Notes under the pieces: model-generated
What the model was told of the DNA's origin: nothing
Seen by the model: the letters and a program-made list of their open reading frames with translations, nothing else
Database searches by the model: none
In this document: one piece after another, positions 3,001-63,168 of the stretch
Numbering within the stretch: the first letter of the stretch is position 1
Layout: every line of letters begins with the position of its first letter
Source: Auanema rhodensis
Taxonomy: Eukaryota; Animalia; Nematoda
Direction: 5' to 3'
NCBI GenBank assembly: GCA_964057225.1
Contig: OZ059896.1
Location: forward strand, 8,556,001-8,620,000
Length of the DNA stretch: 64,000 nt
Made by a program: the position numbers and the translations under genes

Positions 3001-6000
3001 ATATTTCTTTCAACAGTTGCAACCACTTTTGTTCCTTCTATAGCAGATCACAATTTCTCTCATATAATTGATTTTTTCTTTAATCTCGTTCACCTGAAGA
3101 TGATTCGGAACATATCTTCTGGATTGCGGTAATTTTTGCTCGATAGCCTTTTCATTGTTTTTCTTTGATCGTTATCCGTTTGCTCCGCTAATCGAGATGT
3201 CATTGTTCCTCACCGTTTTCGTGTTGAAGATGAGATAAACGGTTGTGCATCTGTCCTTTCCTGTGCACGTGAATATCTCAAAAAGTTGTTTCTTTAACAC
3301 TTTTTGACGTCGTTTTACAGATAATTCTTCTAATATTCTAATGATTATCTTTACATAATAGTTTTCACGTGAACCTTACGCCATTGCTGTTAATGAAATG
3401 ACGCAAACCGGTTGTTGATCTCAAAATTTAGTTAAATTCAAAATTCGAAATTTATATATTCAGTTATTTCTTTTTTTATCTCTCTTAACGTTTTTGCGCA
3501 TATTTATTGTAATTATCTTCGCATTTTAAAGATTTATTTATGACCTTAATCTAAGAGGCTCGAAAGTACAAATTATAAGACTGAGTAGAATAATAGAAGT
3601 AACACTGGTTGTCGATCTGCTCTGTTAAAGACTCAACGTTATTCCTGCCATCAGAAACATGCTATGAACCTGTTTCTATCATCACTAGTATCTCTTCTAT
3701 TCCCTTTTTATATGCAGATATCCAAATGTTAGCTATTTTTGTTATTTTTCCAGATTGACATGAATTTCAGCAGTTAAATATTCAATTATTCTTTTCAATG
3801 TAACATAATTCATTTTTAACCTTGTGTGGAATAGTGAAAGTGGTGGAATTAGAGGAGGAGGGAACTATGAATCATACTTTTAAGATTTTTTTTTTGAGTT
3901 TAGTCATGCGAACACTATTTGATCCCTGATGTAACTGTTTATATTTTATTAGTTTATATCATTTTATTTTATCACGAGGCTTGTTCAAGAGCTAGGTAGA
4001 TCATCTGACATATCGCTGGTTAGATCAAGCCGTTCGGCGTAAAACGATACTGTTTTCCACTTTTCAACCTGCTGTTGATGCGCCTCGTTTATGATACGGG
4101 TTCAGTGCTTATTTCTCTTCTTTCGACGGTTTAGATAATGAGTGAATTTTGACGATTGTTAACTTTGACAATGGATTTTCTATTTTGTTCTGATTAACGT
4201 TGATAAGAATTTTCTATCGAGAATGCTCTGTGTAAAAAGATTGCTCTTTACGAAGATTGCTAAGACTTTTTGAAAAGACTACTTACTAATTCTGGATCAA
4301 ATGATGAAAGGTAAATCGTTTAACTATTTCTTAACCGTTTTGTATATTATATATACTTGCATTGATAATATTTCCCTTAGCAATTTTCAAATTCGTCAAT
4401 TCCCGTTCGTGAAAAAGTTTTCTTAGGCGGTCATATATACCACATTGTTGTAAAAGTTTTCCCGTTTGACAAGAAACTCTTAATTATATTTTCATTTCAT
4501 TGGCTGTTTAAAAGCTATAATTTCTAAATTAATTTAATTAATCTTGTGTTCACTTTAAATCCAACGTTTGCTTGTTTCCACGTGCCTGCTTCTTTCGAGC
4601 AATGGAAATGCTAAATTGAAAACTTATCATTCAAGAATTATGACCCTGAGAGACAGCAAATATTGCCAAGTTGATCTTAAGCTTTTCGATAGATAGTTCT
4701 CATAAATAACATCACGTTATGTATGAATCAGGTTTCCATTCCGCCTTCACTCCTTTTTTAATGTATTGATTTAAAATTGTAAAGAGCATTTGATCAAAAG
4801 ATAGGCTTTATCATTTATTCCACCCGAGCAACTTTTCAGCTTCTCCAAAACTGACAATCGAATTGCGGGTAGAAAAAACAATATTTTTGTACGATGTTGT
4901 TAAACACAATATATCGCTTGTAAGATAATGCTAACATTTATTACCTGAAATTATCATTGATAAGAGTTTGAGCTTATGCTCTCAATTCTTGCAATCATTT
5001 ATCATTGGTGTAACTTTATGAAAATTACATTATACTATCCAATCATTGCATAATTGATTTTCTATTATATATGAATGAAGGTAATATATTCTTCTGGATC
5101 ATCTTTCTTTTGTTATTATCTCGTCATCTTCTTTCTGACCAATTCTCTTTCCGTTTAAGGCCACACCTTCAATATTTTATATAGTATTCATATCTATTAC
5201 CTTTTTTTCGGTTGATATGGGTATCGATTATCAAACGAATTCCTTTCTTGAGAACAAATATTTTATAATTGGTTCAATTTTCTTTTCCATTGTCATGCCG
5301 TCATATGAATGGCAAACCTGATCCTCTTAGGCTTGGACAAAGTTTCTATTTTCTATTGCTAACTTCATTGATTTCTCTATTTCATCTGTTAGTACATTAG
5401 GGGTCGTTTTCATCTGTTTTTTTCGGGTACCCTGTTTGTCCTTTCAAACAAAGGACCTGTTTTTCATCTTGCAAGATAATCGAACTGACAATCTATATAT
5501 GTTATATCATATATGTAATATTAGTAAAAACTTGGCATTTTAAATTTTGTGTGTTTGCTGAACATTTTTAATGCCAATCTATAACATTTATAGTTTCAAA
5601 TAAAAAATTGAAATACAGTTCTTGTCTCATTCTTACAATTGCCGATATTGTTTTAACAAACCTGTATTAGTCTCAATTACGTATCTTAAAGTACATTGAA
5701 TGCAAATGTTGCATTTGCCATACTTCACATAAACGTTATTGCATTTTCTTAATGTATTTGTTGTGTTGAATGAAAGCATTTTATTCTGTATGTAGTAGAC
5801 GATGAAACAACTCTTCTAATAGTCTGTTTGGCTCGGATATCCTTTACAGCCGTGTTCATCTGTATCGGGTTCTTTGAAAGATATTTACTATGGTTAGAGT
5901 CGACATATCCTAACTAATTTGCCATTCTTCTTAATGATTGAATAGATTATTCTCTCACATGTATGTCCTCGATCATGCCAGTCCATTTGCATATTAACTC

Positions 6001-38925: not shown

Positions 38926-41900
38926 TTATTTAGATGCGGCAGCAGTAGCTGTTTGAGTTGGATTAGTCGGTTGAGCTGGAGGTTCAGCAAATGGATCATC
39001 CTTAGTACCTTCCGAGACAATTGGAGCGATCATTTGAACGAATTCTTCATAATCAATCTAAATATAATATTTATAATAATTTATATAAATTTCAAAAAAA
39101 AAACCTGTTCATCTCCATCTTTATCAACTTCTTTAATAATCTCATCAACTTCTTCTTCTGTAAATTTTTCTCCCATAGTTGTCATAAAATGTTTAAATTC
39201 TTGAGCTGTTATAAAACCATTTCCATCTTTATCAAATACTCTGAAATAAACAATAATAATAATAAAAATAAATATTATTTGAACATACTTGAAAGCTAAT
39301 CGAATTAACTCTTGATCAGTTTCTTTATTCATTTCTTTCATCATTTTGCAAAATTCTCCGAAATCAATTTTTCCATTTCCATCAACATCATATTCATTGA
39401 CCATATTAAGTAATTCTTCTTCTGTTGGGTTGAGACCTAATGTTCTCATAGCGACCCCTAATTCTTTGATATTCATAGTACCATTTCCATCTTTGTCAAA
39501 CATCTAAAACACATTTTCGTTATTATTTTGAAGAATAAATGAGAAATCGTTGTTTTTAGTCAACCGTATGTGTGGTATATTGGTTCTTAAAAACGAAAAA
39601 CACTAATCTTGACCTTGAAAGCTTGAGCAAATTCCTGTAATTCCTCCTGAGTAAACTCTTCAACTTCCGAAGAAGCAGAATTATTGGTGTATTGACGATG
39701 CATTTCACGGTTTTGCCCTGGAGCTGAAATATGTTGAACGATAAGAATGGATCAATATAGTTTTAAGATTAAAAAAATATGAAAATAGAAGAAAAAGAAG
39801 AAGTAGAAGAAGAAGTAGAAGAAGATAACATGATTGTTTTGAAAAGAAAACAATGTTTCTTGTTTAGTTTATGAAAGAAACAAAAAAAAACGAAATGCTT
39901 GTAACTTCGAATGTAGAATGAAGATGACAAGATTTATATGCTGTGTTGAAGATCTAGTGTGTTTGCAGGAAGTAAAAGAAACTTAACAAAAAAAATTTTG
40001 GAAGCAGCATTTCGAAAAAATTGTTGGAAATATAAAAAAAAATTCATATTCTTTGAAAATAGACTTTGTGTTTCTGTTTTGCGTTAAATTTTCTTTCTCA
40101 TTTTCCATATTTCGACTAATTCAAAACATATGCGATGACTGAATGAGCTTTCATTGGAATGTGAAAAAGCTTAAATTCTAAACAAACTAAACGAAAACGA
40201 AAAATCTGAGCAAATAACTTTTTAGCTAATAGAATATAAAAAGGTATTAAAAGGAATAGTTTAAGAAAAGTTTAGAGAAAAAAAAAGAAAAATAATAAGT
40301 TTAAATGTAATAGATGACAAAAAGTGAAGAAAAAAGAACAAAATGAGATAAAGAGAGGTTATGAGAGGGAAAAAATAAAAGTTTAATAGGGATTGAGAGA
40401 AAAGAAGGAGGGATCTCCGACACTGTTTTCAGAAACTTCATTTACTTCAACAAAAAAAATCATAGCTTTCTCTTTCTTATCCTCGTTCTCTTTTTTTCTC
40501 TCTTTCTCTTTCTCTTTCTCTCTCTCTCTTTCAGAGTAATTTTATACGAGAGGAGAAATAAGTAGAGAATGAAATGTGAAAAATTGAACATAAGATATGA
40601 AGAAGTGTGAGGTGAAAGTATGAGAGAAACAGAATGAAAGGAATAAGTTGAACACATGTAATTGGAGATGGAGGTATAAAGAATGTTTGAAAAAAACGAA
40701 AAGTTTTTAAAACGGAAAGTCATCTAAGGCATATAGAAATGGGAGAAAAACAATGTTTGAAACGAAGATGAAGTATCCGATACCACTATTTGTCAGAAGA
40801 GTTTTACGAGCAAAATACTTAGAAAACATGTCAATTGATTGATGAAGTAAAAAATGAGTTAATTTGTGATTTTATATATTATATACTATATGTATTCTAT
40901 TATTTATTTTATTTTTTATTGTATTTTTATGATATAATTTGTATTTTTACTATACATATTAAAATTAATAATTAAGATTGTAGAAGTTATTTAAGAAGAG
41001 AAGTATAATTAAAGAAGATCTTTATGTAGTAACTTTATGGCAAAATATTTTAAAGTTTTTAGAATAAGAAATATGTTGAAAAGGAATAATAAAAGTCATT
41101 TTTATGTTCAAAGAATTGACAAATATATCATCTTCTTTAGCTAGATATAGATATATATGAATGAATGAGATAGATAGATAGATAGATTTGAGTTGTCGAT
41201 AAGATTCTACATGTTAAGCAAAATGATGGAAATGTTTCAAGTATTGAATGAGCAAAATAGAAATAGATGGATACTATAACTAGGAGAGAAAAAAAAACTT
41301 GAAATGCTTGACATGCTGAAATAGACAAAATAGGAATGAGATAAATGAAGAATGAAGTCTTTCACTTCAGAAAAATCTTCAAAAGAGAATTAAAACAAAA
41401 AAAAAGGAGAAACGAACACAATTCTTTCAAACAAATAGTGAAATCCTTGTGGTTGAGCTGTTTGGGTGGGGGGGGGGGGAATGAAGGTTAAGAACAGCTG
41501 CATGCCGCCTTGTGAAAGATGTCAGAGTTATTGAAGGGAAGACCTATGTCTTCCGGTTGAAGCATATCCGACAAGAAACCATACGAGTGCAAGACCAATA
41601 CGCTTTTATTTGAAAGAAATGGACGTTTTTCGGTAAAAAAAGAAGAAGAAGAGGTGAATCGACGATATCATTGTGGTGATTGATATATGATTAATGAATA
41701 AATTATAAAATAATTTAAATAAATAAATAAATATATATAAACTGTATAAAATTAATAAAAAATATATGTTTATATAGTATAATATTATATATCTTTCATG
41801 ATGTTTAATATAAAATTATTTTGTCCCAATAGATTGTGATAATAAATAAAAATGAACAGAAGGTGGTAGTAAACATCATTATTTCAACTTGCTTCGCCAG

Positions 41901-43263: not shown

Positions 43264-46061
43264 CTGAAAACAATAAAAGTGTTTAAAGCAAAGAATAAAT
43301 AGTAAGTAAGTAAGTAAGTCAGCTAGTCAGTCAGTAGTAATAGAGTAATTGACAATTCATGTTTGTTTCATTTTTTTCTTAAAAGAAAAAAAATAAAAAA
43401 GAAAAGAAAAAAGACAAAAAGTAAAGATGAAACGACAACAAACATGTGTTTAAACAATATCTATCATCGTTCTACTACTATTCATTCGTCGTTCGTTAGT
43501 ATATCAAATAACTTTCATTCATCTCTCATGTATTTTGTTATCTTTTGTCAGGAACATTTTTTTTTTATTTTCCCCGAACAAACTAAGCTGTTGTTGTTCA
43601 TCGTGATTCAAGATAATAATTATTGAAATAACATAAGTTCTCTGACAGAATATATATCAAAGTATTCACGCTCAAACTTAGGTCATATTAAGTTCATATA
43701 TAGAATTAAGTTTAAATCAAAAGAAATATATTTTAATTTTATAAAAACAAAACAAAATTTTAAACATTTTCAAATATGTTTATAGACATGAATATACATA
43801 GAAATGTTATTTTATTTCTATATATGTATATGTAGTTAAATAACTAATTATTCTATTAAATATGTCATTTAATAGTTAAATGTTTAAGATTTTTGAAATA
43901 TGTGAGTGACAACACGACTGCCAACTTCTTGTAATTAAGATATATAAATGAGTAGCATAATGGATATGTTATAGTAAAAATAAGAATAAAATGAGTAACT
44001 TAAAGTGAAACATGGCAAGAAAAAACTTTTTTTTATGGTAATAATAAATATTTAATTAACTAAATTTAAATTATATTTATAGAATGTTAATTCACTTTCT
44101 CTCATTTGTTTATATTATTTGTAAATAATATAAATAAATATTTATATGTATATTATGTGGATTTAATTTAAGAGCAGATTAATCATAAATATTATTTCAT
44201 TTTTTTTTTTTTTTTGGTTTTTTTTCATATATTTTCAACAAAAATTGATATACCTATAGGATCATATATACACATATACATATGTACATGTACATACATA
44301 CATATATGATATATTTATAAAATAAAATTAACTTAAATTGGCTTTTAAAGTAAAATTATAATAACATTAGCTTATATACGCTGAAAAGTCTTTTACTAGC
44401 TTCTCACAAAATTGAGATGAAGATGAAATTTCTGATGACAAAGCCAGCAGATAGAATGAAGACGACACAATGAATGATCCTCAGAACATGACCTTTATCT
44501 AATCTCTGATTTTGAAGCATTTTTTGTGAGGAAAAAAAATAATTTTAAAGCCCATTAGCCAATCACACATTTTTGTTTTTTTTTTTGAAGTTGACTGAAC
44601 AACTACGAATATATATTTATAATATTTGTCAGATGAAGTTAAAGATAAACTGAAGATTGTTGAGAGAAGACTATTTAAAACGACTAAAAGTAAATTGAGT
44701 ATTCATGTATTCATTGAATTTTATGTATATCTTTTGGTTCTGTTTTAGATTCCATTTCTTCACAAAGATTATTATGCATTTTTTTTATTTCAAGACATTT
44801 GCAATGATAATAAAAATAGTTTTTAACTAATGTTAAGATCAAAATCTCTTGAAATATTATGAACTACAAACTTGCTGTTATAACGAAAATTTTAGAATTT
44901 TTGATTGTAATAATAGAATTTATGAAAAAAAACTTTTCAATAAACTCGAAGAGATTAAATTTGAGAATTTCTTTTTGACTACTCATCAAAACTCTTTTCT
45001 TTTTCTCTTTTCTCCCATCTTCATCATCATCATCCATGTCCACAGGCTACATACATACATTAAAGATTTGTGAGTGTGTAAAACTGAATAAGGATAACCC
45101 AAACGAACAATAATAACTTTTTTTTCTTTAAAATTTTCTTATTTTAGTATAATAAATATAATAATTTTCATATATAAAATTTTTTTTTTCATGTTTTTCT
45201 ATTTAAATTGTATGAAATTGAAGTCGTCTAATCGGGATAACAAGATCAATCAAATCTTTTTTTCTCACGGTTTTCATGAACTTGACTGAAACTTAAGAAG
45301 TTCGCAAGTCCTAAGATTTTGTAGTTCAAAATTAATAAAAATGGATCGAAAACAGTAAAATTGATGAAAATTTTCGTTTTATTTATTAAAAATAACGTCA
45401 ATACTTAGTGCAGTAAACTATGAATGAACAAGAATCAAAATTTAAAAGTTTGATGAAGGAAATAGCAAACTTTGTGTGGGGAATGATGTAAGTTGTCATC
45501 TGTATATCCAAAAATTGACATTTTTAGATGAATTTTTCATCAAATGCAATATGTAATGAGTAATATAATGAAATTTTGAATAAAACATACAGGATCAAAC
45601 GATCTTTCTTCAGGATAATCTCACAGATATTATACAACATAATTTCCAAATAATATATGTTTATTCGGTGAAAAAAAACAAAATGAAAATTTTTGTCTTT
45701 TTCTTTTTCCTTTTTAAAGCAAAAAAACAAAAGAAGTTTGCAGTCATTTGACTCTTTGTAATTGCATCTTTTCTCTCTACATATCATTAAATAAATCCAC
45801 AAATGACACCACTTACTTGCTACAAATTGGTTTCCTCATAAAGTTTCTTATTCTTCTAACTAATTTTTTGTGGCTATTTTCTCAAAAATTATTTGTAAAA
45901 TGCAAATAGAATTATTAAAAATTGATTTTTTCATTTCACAAAGTTTAGGAATTCTAAAACTACAAAACGGTGTTAAAAATAGAAAAGAATTCACGACTAC
46001 TATATCATATTTTCATTATTCCACGACAAGATATAGTTTTGATAAAACCTTATTAACTAAC

Positions 46062-46120
46062 CGAGAACGAAAACCACGTCTGGTGGGTCCACGACGATTG
46101 ATAGGGTCACGTTTCAACAT
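46062..46120 (-). CDS. Candidate alternative first coding exon A of the calmodulin-like gene
   Basis: MLKRDPINRRGPTRRGFRS + CG|GTTAGT. Phase-2 donor compatible with exon 43157-43263. GC-rich island in AT-rich sequence. Confidence 0.6.
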
Positions 46121-46634
46121 CGTTGAAAACACAGTCAAAAATGGTCAGAGCTGGAGCTTCATAAGGATCTGTTAGCTCTAGTCGTCCCAGGCTTTCACAT
46201 GCTTTTACTCCCTCCCTTTTTTCCTCCCCCCACACCACTCTCTTGCTTTCTCTGTCTTGCTCTCTCTCTCTTCTATCTCTCACATTCTGTCTTTCTACTC
46301 CTTTCGTTGTTTCATTTTCTTTTTTTCTCTTTCATTTACCCCTTTCTTTTTTGACTCTTGAGAGACTGAAACCCCGCCTTTTTCGTATTTCTTAGGCTAC
46401 CTCCTTGCTTTTTGGTGGGTGGCTTATATGTCTGATGGCTTTGCCCACCAGCAAAAAAGGAAAATGAAGGGATTGTCCCAAGATAGACAAAAAAAGTTCG
46501 AAAAGCTTTATCATTTTCGAGAATACTCCATAGCGACGCGAAACAACCTTAATTGACCCTATACATCAAGCCCAACATAAAAATCTGATTTTTGAATTTT
46601 TAACCAAAAAAACACTTAGTTCACAGAATAATGT

Positions 46635-46704
46635 GGGGAGTTGGCCTAACTGGTAAACGCCTATGTATAAAGGAGTTGGCTAAGGTTCGAATCCCAGTAA
46701 GTCC
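46635..46704 (+). promoter_or_regulatory. Pseudo-tRNA leader (Pol III A and B boxes) in front of snoRNA copy 1
   Basis: A box TGGCCTAACTGG (46642-46653) and B box GGTTCGAATCCC (46684-46695) at tRNA spacing. D, T and acceptor stems are mismatched, so this is not a functional tRNA. Confidence 0.75.
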
Positions 46705-46778
46705 GCCCGTTGATGACAAAGCATAACCACCGAGATATCTGAGTACTGATTAGTCAACATGCAACACCAACTGAGGGC
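46705..46778 (+). ncRNA. Box C/D snoRNA copy 1 (probable SNORD33/snR55-type 18S guide)
   Basis: Terminal stem GCCC/GGGC, box C TGATGA at 46711, D' CTGA at 46739, C' TGATTA at 46747, D CTGA at 46771, T5 at 46782. The D guide CATGCAACACCAA is 12/13 complementary to the conserved 18S sequence UUGGUGGUGCAUG as I recall it. Confidence 0.85.
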
Positions 46779-46880
46779 CTCTTTTTGGAAGGTTTTTTAC
46801 ATTTTTAAACCTCTTATAACAACAAAAAGATATTTTGTTTCGTATAGACCTTGATTAGGTGATTACAGTTTGTAAATCTT

Positions 46881-46949
46881 GCTTGCTGTATAGCAACGGA
46901 GCAAGTGTTCCGATCACGAGCAGGAGTTAGTAGTTCGAATCCCACTAAC
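46881..46949 (+). promoter_or_regulatory. Second-type tRNA-like leader in front of snoRNA copy 2
   Basis: B box AGTTCGAATCCC flanked by GTTAGT/ACTAAC complementarity. The A box is weak (TAGCAACGG). Confidence 0.55.
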
Positions 46950-47023
46950 GCCCGTTGATGACAAAGCATAACCACCGAGATATCTGAGTACTGATTAGTC
47001 AACATGCAACACCAACTGAGGGC
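46950..47023 (+). ncRNA. Box C/D snoRNA copy 2
   Basis: Identical to copy 1 (offset 245 bp), including the T5 run and about 20 nt of downstream flank. Confidence 0.85.
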
Positions 47024-47574
47024 CTCTTTTTGGAAGGTTTTTTACATTTTTAATTTTTATTTTAAAATAACAGTAGTGTAGCAGACTTCCGGTTAAATAA
47101 TATTGTTCTTTCTATTTCACCTTTCTTGTTACATGAGCTTCTTAGTGTTTGATACGTCTGAGGTTAGAGATTCAATATATCCACGGATCTCTTTCTATCC
47201 TTTTCTTTCTCTGAACAACTATGTTAGCAGAGAGAAGTTTGAAAATTTCATCAAATAATTCAAATATTTACTTCAAACTTTCAGTTCAAGGACACATGAG
47301 ATCCATAATTCGTCCAAAGAAGCAATTCCAAAGAAAAATAGATTGATTCTAGCAAAGATTTTTAATAATTATTCAAATGAATACATTGAAATATATTATT
47401 TCTTCCATTTGTAAATGTTTTAAAGTCTTTTTAAATCTTTGAAAATCATAAAAAGTATTTTGAATCGTATTGACCTTCATTAGGTGAGTAGAGTTTATCG
47501 TCTTTGGTTGCTGTATAGCAGGGGGGCAAGTGTTCCGTTCACGAGCAGGAGTTTGTAGTACGAACCCCGCCAAC

Positions 47575-47648
47575 GCCCGTTGATGACAAAGCATAACCAC
47601 CGAGATATCTGAGTACTGATTATTCAACATGCAACACCAACTGAGGGC
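47575..47648 (+). ncRNA. Box C/D snoRNA copy 3
   Basis: Differs from copy 1 by one base (TAGTC to TATTC just after C'). The upstream ~125 nt are a diverged homolog of the copy 2 leader, with B-box-like AGTACGAACCCC. Confidence 0.82.
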
Positions 47649-48116
47649 CTCTTTTTGGAATTTTTTTATTTAAAAGAAAAGATTTTTAATTTTCAAATTA
47701 AAATAATAATAATAGTGTCACAGATATGTGACAGACTTTAAAAACGTAAATGTTTTTAATTTAAAACATTTTCCCCAGTAACGTATAGTATATGATATTT
47801 GATCTTTTTTTTATTATAATTGAAAAACCTTTAATCAAAAAAATGATGTTTTTTCACATAAAATTAGTCTCAAAGCTGTTTATGTCATTTTTACTATTCA
47901 AAAATGAAGAGATAACAACCGTTCGATAATCTCCTAATGTTAAAATAACAATAAAGCCTCCCACGTAGTATGCATAAAATTCATATCTCACGTAAATGAC
48001 GTGACATTGTTGAATAAATGAAATAACAATTAAAGGGAGGAAAAATATAGCTTCAAGAGTAATAATTTGGAGAACTGATACTACAAACATTAAACGTTTT
48101 GAAATTGAAAACTTAC

Positions 48117-58762: not shown

Positions 58763-59289
58763 AATGCTTTGTTGTTGTTATCAAACCTGATAAAATAATT
58801 TTATATGAATTTATATGAATTAAAATATAAAATAATATATAAAAATAATTATTTTATAATAATATTATTAAAAAATAATAAAATAGATCTGGGAATTTTT
58901 CTACTTTTTTTGAACGTATCATCGACTTGATAAAGGCGCCTTTTTTTATTTATTAGGATCTTAAATATGTGAACACAACAACACAAAAAAAATAAAGAAA
59001 TAAATGATTTAAACAGTTTTACAGTAATCTCTTGAAAATAAAATTTATTTGTTAAAGCAAAGAAATGACATTTCTTGTGGAAATTTGTTATTCTTATATG
59101 AAATCATCAATATTTTTTTTAATCACTGATTAGGTTGTATAACACGTAAAGTTTTATTAAACGTTAACAATAGAATCTTTTCTTCTCATTATGAATAATT
59201 GATGAATTGTTTTCTGCGTTTCTGTGCTATATCAATCTTTTATCTTATCGAATGGATGACCTAATGAAAAAAATTTAAGTTGTAGATGT

Positions 59290-59363
59290 GCCGCCATAGC
59301 TCAGTCGGTTAGAGCGTGGGTCTAATAAGCCCAAGGTCGCAGGTTCGACCCCTGCTGGCGGCA
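59290..59363 (+). tRNA. tRNA-Ile (anticodon AAT)
   Basis: Complete cloverleaf: acceptor GCCGCCA/TGGCGGC, D arm GCTC/GAGC, anticodon stem TGGGT/GCCCA with loop CTAATAA, T arm GCAGG-TTCGACC-CCTGC. Confidence 0.97.
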
Positions 59364-61084
59364 AAACATTTTACATTTTCCTGTTTATAATCAAATTATA
59401 ACTTTCTTTCTCTATAAAAGAATAACGTAAGCGTGTTAACATAAAATTATTTTATAAATTTTTCTTTGTAGAAATCAAAGAAAAAAAAGAAAAAGTTTTC
59501 TTGATTTTCGCTATTTGATACTTTTTACAATTTCTCAGAAAAAACCCAATAATCATAAATATGGTTACTGTAATAGGATTTCATCATTTCCGTTCCTGCA
59601 GATGTCAGTACATCTGGTAATATCTGGGAGTTTCCACAAATATTCTGCTACGAAACTGTTTTATTTATTTATATTTATCACATTGTATTATATCTTTATA
59701 TTTCTCCTAGTATTATAACAAAATTATGGATATAGAGAAAGAAGTAAGCCATAAAAGCAGGCTAAAAATTAATATATTTTGCAATCTTAAGCCTATTTTT
59801 ATCTAAATTAATTACTAATACAATCAGTCTTGATCTTCGCTCTATGAAATGTCGTAGTTTTATTTTATAAATTAACAATTCTTTCAATACATAATACCAC
59901 TCACTATTTAGAATTTTCATATTTCAAAAAATTGTCTATACTAACTTTATCATTTTATTAACCAACTGATAAACAATTCGCAAAGTAAGGCATTTTTTTT
60001 TTTTTGGATTCAATTTTTCCTGTTTATCATCATTTTTACAAACAAAAACTTTTTTATTCTCATTTTTAATAAATTCGAATATGACTACCAATGTCAACGA
60101 TTTATTGATAATAAGATTATTGTTTTCATAGACATATATTCTATATCAACCTTTATAATTGTTGTTTTTGTTTTTTTCACAATGTTTAGTCTCTTTCTCT
60201 CTATTCAATCACTTCAATTAAATTGTATTGAATCAAATTTACAGCTTATCTTTTAATCGAAGAAGAAATTAGTTCCCCAATATTATTGCTACAACGACAC
60301 AATGTGTTATACATAATTTTATTATATATATACATATATATTTAAATTTTTTGTGTATTCATTAGTTTATTTGATCAATTTCAACGTTGTGACGAAATGT
60401 TTAACGTCTTGTTTGCCACGAAACTTCTAACATTTCTCTCTCTTTGTTAGACAGTTTTTTCTCATCTTTTCTATGTGTTATTCAACTACTATCTTCTTTC
60501 AATTCAAACTACTGCCTCAACGGTACTACCTTCGTTTGAACTTTCAACCTATTCATTCGAACAATTCTCAATTTAAAATAGTCTTGGACCGACTATTTGT
60601 TTATTTTTTACTACCAAAGTAATATGTTATCAGCTTTCGGTTAATTAAAATATTTATATCTTTTGCACTTCTTCATTATAGTTTAATATTTTAAAATTTC
60701 GTTTTAGTGTTGACGTTTAGTGAATCTAAGATGAATCTAGGGTTTTCATTATATTGTATTGTCTCCATATATTTTATCATTTGCAGTAATTTTGCTCGTT
60801 CTCGCCTGATTTGCTGTTCTTTTCTTACTTATCTTAACTGTATTAGTTGTCGTTTCAAGTTCTGTTTATGGTTACTACATGTTCTAACATAAGCGATTAA
60901 ACGAAATTCTCTATTAATCTATAGCCCCGTGTGGTCTGGTTTGTCGTTTGATTATACAATAATGTTTGCAAAGCTAAGCCTATTGCTCGTTGATATTGTG
61001 TTCTATATGATTATATTGTAAAATATTCTTCATTATCTGTTTTTTCAGCTATTTTCTTTGTTTTTTTTTCAGGTGTTATCAAAC

Positions 61085-63168
61085 ATGGCTGAACCGGCTG
61101 AGATTGAACCATTAAATGTGCAAGTTTGTCTTTTATAAATTTATTTATGTATCGACTCTAATTTCCAGAAGCCTGCACCAGCTCAGTTGGAGATTGAAGA
61201 AAGTGGGAATGAAGAGGGCAAAGGTTTAGCTAAGAATCTTAACCTGTTCAATGGTGTCTCAATCATTGTTGGCTGTATTATTGGTTCCGGAATTTTTGTT
61301 TCTCCAACTGGAGTTCAAGAAAGTAGCGTCTATTCTCAATTGTTAAATTAATTTCCAATTTTAGTGGCTGGATCTGTTGGAATGTCATTGATTGTTTGGA
61401 CTACATCTGGCTTATTTACTGCCATAGGAGCTTATTGTTATGCTGAATTGGGTATCAAATACTAAGTACTCATAATTATTCTAGTTTTACAAGTTTAGGT
61501 ACTTTGATTAAGAAATCTGGTGGTGATTATGCGTATATCATGGAAGCTTTTGGGCCCTTCTTAGCCTTTGTTCGCTTATGGATTGAAGCCATTGTTGTTA
61601 GGTAACACTATTATACGAATTTGTATTTATTTTTTTGCTTCTATTATAGACCATGTACTGTAACTATAGTGTCTTTAACGTTTGCTCTCTATATTCTACG
61701 TCCATTTTACCCAGATTGTGATCCTCCTGAGGGACTTCCTCAGTTATTGGCAGTTCTTCTCATAAGTAAGTTATTGAATTGTGTTGATAATTTAAATGAA
61801 ACATTAAAGTTCTCATGACTGCCATCAACTGCATCAGTGTTCGGGCTGCAACGTTTGTTCAAGATTTTTTCACTGTTGCTAAAGTTTTTGCACTTCTTCT
61901 TATCATAGGAGCTGGCTTGTTCCTTCTTGGAACAGGTATAACATTTAATTTGTAAATTTAAAATACTTGTAATTTGTAGGAGCACCACAGTATCGGGAAT
62001 CATTCGAAAATATATTTGAAGGAACAGCTAAAGATCCTACTCAAATTTCTTTAGCTTTCTATTCGGGTCTTTTCGCTTATTCTGGATGGAACTTCTTGAA
62101 CTTTATTGTGGAAGAAATGAAAAACCCCAAAAGGCAAGCCCTGTCTTAATGATACAACTCAACTCATACTTACAGAGACCTTCCCTATGCTATTGCTATA
62201 TCAATCTCAACTTGCACTTTAATTTACGTGCTAACCAATGTTGCTTTATATGCAGCAATTTCTCCAGATGAGATGCTTGAGAGTCCAGCAGTTGCTGTGG
62301 TTTGTACACGACTAACAAAGGCTTTAGAAAATATATTTCAGCTTTTCGCTAACAAGTTGTTCGGACCGTTTGCCTTCTTGATGCCACTGTTTGTTGCATG
62401 TTCTACTATTGGATCAGCTAATGGTGTTATCTTCACATCTTCTAGGTATGTTATAGTTTTAAATTTTTAATTTCAAAGTCATTTTACTTAAGATTGTTTT
62501 ATGTTGGTGCCAGAGAAGGCCAAATGCCCATGGTTCTTACAATGATTAATAAGAAAACCAGAACTCCAATTCCAGCTGTTCTTCTTACTGTAAGCCATTT
62601 TGTTTTTAAATTCTAATAGTACTTTATGAATCTCAGGGTCTTCTATCTATGTGTTATTTGGTTCTTTCTAAGAATATCTATGCTCTTATCAATTATATTC
62701 AAATTTCTTATTGGTTAGCTATTGGTGCTGCTATCGTTGCTCTATTTTATCTGAGAAAGAAGATGCCTGATGCTCCCAGACCAATTAAGGTATTTATTAA
62801 AAAAAATCATCTTCATCTTATTATTTCTTATAGGTTCCTCTTATTTGGCCGATTATTTTCTTAGCAGGATGTATTGCTTTAGTCATTATCCCTATCGTTG
62901 CTGCTCCTAAGGATACCGGTAGCAAAATTCTTTTAGACTAAACCAAATTATAACTATTATAGCTGTTGGAATTCTTATAATGTTATCAGCTGTTCCAGTT
63001 TATCTTATCTTCATTTCTTGGAAAAACAAACCAGCATTCATTGACAAGTTGACAAGTAATCTTTATGATCTAATTTTTAAAGAAAAAAAAACATTTAATG
63101 TTATAGCTTCGTTCACTATTTTCATCCAGAAGATGTTCTTAGTAGTTGATGATTCTAAAGAAGATTAA
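61085..63168 (+). CDS. L-type amino acid transporter light chain (SLC7 LAT / aat family)
   Basis: [78 protein letters not shown] and [14 protein letters not shown]. The conserved extracellular Cys (PFYPDCDPP) for the heavy-chain disulfide is present. Ends VDDSKED*. Confidence 0.95.

Follow-up and report, generated by a model that had tools for sequence, protein, structure and literature searches.

In Caenorhabditis elegans, snoRNA genes can be preceded by a tRNA-like upstream motif with A and B boxes, as the initial annotation of the DNA analysed here correctly stated; the motif is named UM2, and loci of this type were reportedly described by Deng et al. in 2006. The box A- and B-like submotifs of UM2 lie about 33 bp apart and begin about 60 nt before the mature end; transcription initiates 70 bp ahead of that end, at a point 9–13 bp 5' of box A (PMC2527325). 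Mutation of the two boxes reduces expression to 7–26%, joint leader–snoRNA transcripts have been sequenced at four loci, and transcripts end at at least four T (PMC2527325). The leader fragment was never recovered, leaving both cleavage followed by decay and 5' exonuclease trimming as possible routes of maturation; loci of this type include CeN37, CeN39, CeN53, CeN55 and CeN119 (Li et al. 2008, PMC2527325). According to the account of Ikegami and Lieb (2013) given in PMC5364375, Pol III, TFIIIC and TBP occupy box A/B at 51 C. elegans snoRNA genes, and knock-down of NPP-13 leaves long unprocessed snoRNA transcripts. The leader–snoRNA layout, its promoter function and its occupancy by Pol III are already published for C. 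elegans, the layout having been described since 2006–2008.

We analysed a 64,000-nt stretch of the Auanema rhodensis genome (assembly GCA_964057225.1, contig OZ059896.1, positions 8,556,001 to 8,620,000, forward strand), hereafter the window, whose coordinates are used throughout. It contains a cluster that we consider likely to comprise three independent tandem Pol III genes for one nematode box C/D snoRNA, the counterpart of C. elegans sn1502 and of SNORD33. The cluster shares with the UM2 loci box A/B motifs in a leader of about 60–70 nt adjoining the mature snoRNA, an oligo-T stop soon after the 3' end and a leader that is a decayed tRNA, both animals being nematodes; it differs in belonging to another species and in comprising three tandem copies with diverged leaders. 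Saccharomyces cerevisiae SNR52 and the Pol III snoRNAs of Drosophila resemble the arrangement proposed here in having an internal type-2 promoter within a transcribed and then removed leader of a box C/D snoRNA, but belong to other lineages and are other snoRNAs, the yeast case being a single locus (as outlined in PMC2527325). Plant dicistronic tRNA–snoRNA genes likewise combine a tRNA-type promoter and a downstream snoRNA in one Pol III transcript, but keep a functional tRNA that is cut by RNase Z (also in the outline given by PMC2527325), whereas no tRNA structure is left at our locus.

The trio is real but ordinary and opens no new question. It adds a delimited set of three snoRNA genes with predicted rRNA targets to nematode annotation and, if the proposed reading holds, would place the Pol III leader–snoRNA layout of C. 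elegans in use outside that species, amplified in tandem.

Three copies of a box C/D snoRNA unit

Reading of the sequence and a repeat finder located three copies of a 74-nt unit, which, together with the oligo-T runs that follow them, are as follows:

46705–46778 (+), box C/D snoRNA copy 1; Rfam sn1502, 42.8 bits, E 1.1e-7
46711–46716 (+), copy 1 box C
46726–46738 (+), copy 1 D' guide
46739–46742 (+), copy 1 box D'
46747–46752 (+), copy 1 box C'
46758–46770 (+), copy 1 D guide
46771–46774 (+), copy 1 box D; terminal stem of the copy GCCC/GGGC
46782–46786 (+), T5 run after copy 1, putative Pol III terminator
46950–47023 (+), box C/D snoRNA copy 2, same sequence as copy 1
47027–47031 (+), T5 run after copy 2
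47575–47648 (+), box C/D snoRNA copy 3; sn1502, 43.3 bits; T at 47623
47652–47656 (+), T5 run after copy 3

The claim that this unit occurs three times, at 46705, 46950 and 47575, with at most one difference was borne out: copies 1 and 2 are identical and copy 3 carries one substitution, a G to T change at unit position 49 (47623), immediately 3' of box C' and outside the boxes and guide duplexes. Re-reading also confirmed every detail of the anatomy first described for it, namely a GCCC/GGGC stem, boxes C, D', C' and D, and a T5 run 3 nt downstream. The terminal stem is 4 bp long in all three copies. Box C (UGAUGA) occupies unit positions 7–12 and is preceded in each copy by U rather than the R of RUGAUGA; box D' (CUGA) lies at positions 35–38, box C' (UGAUUA) at 43–48 and box D (CUGA) at 67–70, the last again in all three copies. 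The three nucleotides between each copy and its TTTTT run are CTC. These features support the view that the three units are genuine, locally triplicated box C/D snoRNA genes.

Leaders carrying A and B boxes

Each unit is preceded by a leader of about 70 nt, in which B boxes were scored against GGTTCGANNCC (11 positions) and A boxes against TRGCNNANNNGG (12 positions):

46635–46704 (+), leader of copy 1, with A box TGGCCTAACTGG at 46642–46653 (12/12)
46684–46694 (+), B box of leader 1, GGTTCGAATCC (11/11)
46880–46949 (+), leader of copy 2, with A-like box TAGCAACGGAGC at 46891–46902 (10/12)
46932–46942 (+), B box of leader 2, AGTTCGAATCC (10/11)
47505–47574 (+), leader of copy 3, with A-like box TAGCAGGGGGGC at 47516–47527 (10/12)
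47557–47567 (+), weakened B box of leader 3, AGTACGAACCC (9/11), T to A in the GTTC core

In all leaders the start of the A box lies 41–42 nt before the start of the B box (29–30 nt between the motifs), and the A box starts 59–63 nt upstream of the snoRNA 5' end. TTTT is absent from the 142–144-nt leader-plus-snoRNA units, and only 18% of 144-nt background windows are likewise free of it. Measured against the UM2 layout, the box spacing, the distance to the snoRNA, the T run after the unit and the lack of one inside all agree, the box motifs themselves being perfect in copy 1 and weaker in the other two. A search of the 181-Mb genome for an A box, a B box and box C in succession gave a single hit, copy 1, against zero in the reversed control; a B box followed by box C occurs four times, against two in the control. 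Strict patterns of this kind find few loci and therefore do not recover the family.

No leader contains a recognisable tRNA. ARAGORN (default, -ps and several thresholds) called none in the leaders, even when a leader was given alone, and the Rfam tRNA model RF00005 matched none at E values up to 10, even when a single leader was submitted; the sole Rfam match on the leaders, to mascRNA (11 bits, E 5.3), is not credible. Minimum-free-energy folds of the leaders contain neither a cloverleaf nor an acceptor stem and are not unusually stable. In the fold of leader 2, the B-box hairpin ends exactly at the snoRNA 5' end. A genome pattern search allowing three mismatches for a parent tRNA or further copies of either leader type returned the leaders themselves only. 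The initial annotation had described a leader that keeps a B box, and in copy 1 a clear A box, while its cloverleaf has decayed, which the box scores and folds uphold. It had also expected pseudo or undetermined calls from tRNAscan-SE; ARAGORN and the Rfam tRNA model made no tRNA call at all. The term pseudo-tRNA thus stands for no more than a pair of tRNA promoter boxes set at tRNA spacing.

The leader–snoRNA layout has a parallel elsewhere in the genome, in a homologue of sn2903 (RF01194) on the minus strand of contig 6 near 11895100, which scores 60.6 bits, above the gathering score of 50. Upstream of this gene, the B box GGTTCGAACCC sits 8 nt from the 5' end, and an A-like box precedes that B box by 41 nt; on the other side, T6 comes 4 nt past the 3' end. 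Such a layout is thus nothing unusual in the A. rhodensis genome.

Relationship to sn1502 and SNORD33

An Rfam scan of the units, proposed by the initial annotation, matched a box C/D family, but below its gathering score. With E-value reporting in place of gathering thresholds, all three copies match the full model of the C. elegans box C/D snoRNA sn1502 (RF01189) at 42.8–43.3 bits, with E values of about 1e-7 locally and 2e-6 genome-wide; scores of 43 bits lie under the Rfam gathering score of 60 and do not confer formal membership of the family. Under the same reporting, SNORD33/SNORD32 (RF00133) matches the three copies more weakly, at 24–28 bits. When the window was searched at gathering thresholds, the snoRNAs stayed below them and the tRNA-Ile at 59290 alone passed. 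A covariance-model scan of the whole 181-Mb genome returned the three copies as its sole sn1502 matches. Since the genome has no other match, the three copies are probable orthologues of sn1502.

With sn1502 and SNORD33 the units share the terminal stem, the surroundings of box C (CCGUUGAUGACAA) and, just ahead of CUGA, the D-guide block CAUGCAACACCAA. The unit is shorter than the Rfam sn1502 model (74 nt against 87 nt), and its D' guide departs from the sn1502 consensus, yet with either guide the fifth position would fall on the same C of AGAUC. Relative to SNORD33, the predicted 18S target is identical (human U1326).

Two pattern scans of metagenomes for nematode homologues found none, the first giving 0 matches and the second 18, mostly coding sequence. 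Five microbial-mat metagenome contigs carry a 65-nt element of the form TGATGA...ATGCAACACCAACTGA that has the 16-nt D-guide block in common with our units; CCATCATGATTC borders it on either side, and an A/B-box leader is absent. This element could be a SNORD33-like snoRNA from a eukaryote of the microbial mat.

Predicted rRNA targets

Both guides were compared with the 18S and 26S rRNA of the same genome, using 400 shuffled guides as a control. The D guide forms 12 of 13 pairs with 18S 1227–1239 (UUGGUGGUGCAUG), a match equalled by none of the 400 shuffles; the fifth guide nucleotide, counted upstream from box D, faces 18S U1231. One A-G mismatch interrupts the duplex, at 2 nt from the target, and is implied also for sn1502, whose Rfam consensus has an identical D-guide block. 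By sequence context, U1231 is the equivalent of human 18S-U1326, the target of human SNORD33 (PMC6466398). A weaker 10-bp match around 26S 3418–3427 is an alternative target for the D guide.

The D' guide also forms 12 of 13 pairs, 11 of them contiguous, with 26S 1478–1490 in the conserved AGAUCUCGGUGGUAGUAGCAAAUAUUC region, with C1482 as the target; 4 of the 400 shuffles did as well. This 26S target is not known to be methylated in yeast or human. From these pairings we infer methylation at the guide targets: the mature 74-nt RNA would guide fibrillarin to 2'-O-methylate 18S U1231 through its D guide, and the D' guide probably also directs methylation of 26S C1482.

Position relative to the calmodulin-like gene

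One claim of the initial annotation is not supported, namely that the cluster lies antisense within an intron of a calmodulin-like gene. The gene lies wholly at 38.9–39.7 kb, and the cluster is about 6.9 kb upstream of its start codon:

38926–39703 (−), compact calmodulin-like gene, EF-hand exons 39081–39703

Its exons were examined one by one rather than as a joined spliced model. EF-hand coding sequence at 39081–39503 (−) matches Pfam EF-hand_1 (1.6e-27) and EF-hand_7 (4.7e-27), coding exon 1 occupies 39590–39703 (−) with its ATG at 39703, and the 140-aa ORF includes one short intron that reads through in frame. A TTTCAG acceptor 20 nt upstream of the ATG suggests that the gene may be trans-spliced. 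We take the gene to be most like cal-1. A tblastn search of the whole window with the EF-hand exons found no further EF-hand exon, and no convincing coding ORF was seen from 39.7 to about 60 kb of the window. The snoRNA cluster is on the opposite strand, divergent from the gene and outside its coding introns; only an unseen long 5'-UTR intron or outron could contain it.

History of the three copies

Scanned throughout by BLAST, by pattern and by covariance model, the genome yielded three copies, all within 1 kb, and local amplification, as first proposed, agrees with this, no copy lying elsewhere. Over a tract of 105 nt (46704–46808 and 46949–47053), which comprises the snoRNA and 30 nt of 3' flank, copies 1 and 2 do not differ at any position. 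Because the identity extends 30 nt into this flank, it points to recent gene conversion or duplication, not selection alone. The leaders of the same two copies are about 80% alike in the B-box half and not alignable in the A-box half, and the A-box half of leader 1 is unrelated to those of copies 2 and 3.

A 218-nt unit is common to copies 2 and 3. Between them, 24 of 125 positions differ in the upstream region and leader (10 of 68 in the leader itself), but the snoRNA differs at just 1 of 74 (Fisher p = 9e-5), so that constraint or homogenisation acts on the RNA body and the leader is left to drift.

Leader 1 has a perfect A-box half that cannot be aligned with that of the other two leaders, yet all three copies have the B-box half, the snoRNA and the terminator in common. 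A tentative and rather doubtful reading is that leader halves were swapped or re-recruited during tandem duplication in a modular fashion; if true, the halves of Pol III leaders would be exchangeable. Equally speculative, and separate from this, is the proposal that the D' guide specifies a nematode-specific 2'-O-methylation of 26S C1482. That position lies 9 nt upstream of the equivalent of the conserved A1511 site, and the D' guide may have co-evolved with the rRNA since the Caenorhabditis split.

Proposed transcription and processing

On the reading that we favour, TFIIIC would bind the A- and B-box-like motifs in the tRNA-derived leader of about 70 nt, and Pol III is predicted to start about 9–13 nt upstream of box A. 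It would transcribe leader and snoRNA together, as an RNA of about 150 nt, and stop at the T5 run 3 nt past the snoRNA. Box C/D proteins would assemble on the kink-turn that boxes C and D form together with the GCCC/GGGC stem. The leader could be removed by endonuclease cleavage and decay, or by 5'–3' trimming, with the bound proteins setting the mature 5' end. The RNase Z-like cut suggested by the initial annotation is a conjecture, and the leaders have neither an acceptor stem nor a cloverleaf. What the sequence shows is the anatomy, the copy number, the resemblance to the family, the complementarity of the guides and a divergence far lower in the RNA body than in the leader; we infer the polymerase, the start site, the removal of the leader and the methylation. 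The initial annotation had proposed independent Pol III units; the sequence lends this support, in that every copy comes with a separate A/B-box leader and oligo-T stop. The GTTC core of the copy 3 B box is changed, and copies 2 and 3 have A boxes of middling quality; with these weaker boxes, not all three copies need be active.

It is unlikely that the snoRNAs are instead made by Pol II, either from an upstream promoter of their own or within a long plus-strand host or read-through transcript, with the A/B boxes surviving as fossils. The roughly 55 nt that copies 2 and 3 share further upstream, detected by the repeat finder, could hold another promoter, and the leaders evolve fast, as their 10 differences in 68 positions between these copies attest. 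However, there is no plus-strand coding gene around the cluster, a T5 run closes each unit while TTTT is absent inside, and the spacing of the boxes and their distance to the snoRNA match the tested UM2 promoter of C. elegans (PMC2527325). Copy 1 moreover has perfect A and B boxes, in the only such arrangement with box C in the genome. A functional tRNA as leader, its 3' end cut by RNase Z so that both RNAs are freed as in plant dicistronic genes, would account for the leader length of about 70 nt, for A and B boxes at tRNA positions 8 and about 50, and for the copy 2 hairpin that ends exactly at the snoRNA 5' end. This reading is very improbable given that ARAGORN (default, -ps) and the Rfam tRNA model are silent, also for an isolated leader, that no fold has an acceptor stem or cloverleaf, and that the three leaders differ greatly, those of copies 1 and 2 having 5' halves that cannot be aligned. 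The tRNA-like 5' part and T-rich 3' end also recall a tRNA-derived SINE or a retroposed pseudogene family, for which the initial annotation would have expected hundreds of dispersed copies with decayed boxes. Three local copies with intact boxes and conserved guides were found in their place, and at that copy number, within 1 kb by all three kinds of genome scan, the SINE reading is refuted, and we give it next to no credence.

A variant of tandem Pol III genes, a refinement of that explanation and not a true alternative to it, holds that only copy 1, or copies 1 and 2, are working and that copy 3 is a decaying duplicate with an impaired promoter. We regard this as possible, though less probable than not. 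Copy 3 has a T to A change in the GTTC core of its B box and an A box of 10/12, as compared to 11/11 and 12/12 for the B and A boxes of copy 1. Its snoRNA body, on the other hand, has changed at only 1 of 74 positions against 19% in the flanks, which speaks for selection or conversion still at work, and so for use or for a recent homogenisation.

Genomic surroundings

The genome is very AT-rich, and its tandem SL1 RNA genes, numbering more than 50, mark it as that of a nematode; GGTTTAATTACCCAAGTTTGAG followed by GT, as the best of them reads, is the 22-nt canonical nematode spliced leader with its donor. A GC-rich hairpin, UUGCUUUUUGGUGGGUGGC ... GCCCACCAGCAAAAAAG, spans 46402–46461 (+), some 180 nt ahead of copy 1; it folds at −24 kcal/mol (z = −2.7 on the plus strand) and has no Rfam match, and a search for non-coding RNA over 45700–46640, upstream of copy 1, gave no significant Rfam match. 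An island of about 41% GC at 46040–46400, in a region of about 25% GC, could be a promoter or an untranslated exon; a CT-rich tract runs through 46200–46350 (+), and small palindromes, GTTTCAAC-ATC-GTTGAAAC, lie near 46112. Between 51880 and 52040, a low-complexity tract rich in GA/CT dinucleotides gives rise to long SLSLSL and ERERER ORFs. The only true tRNA of the window is an intact tRNA-Ile(AAU) at 59289–59364 (+), found by ARAGORN and by Rfam (71.8 bits). ORF fragments at 62086–63168 (+) resemble exons of an amino-acid transporter or permease.
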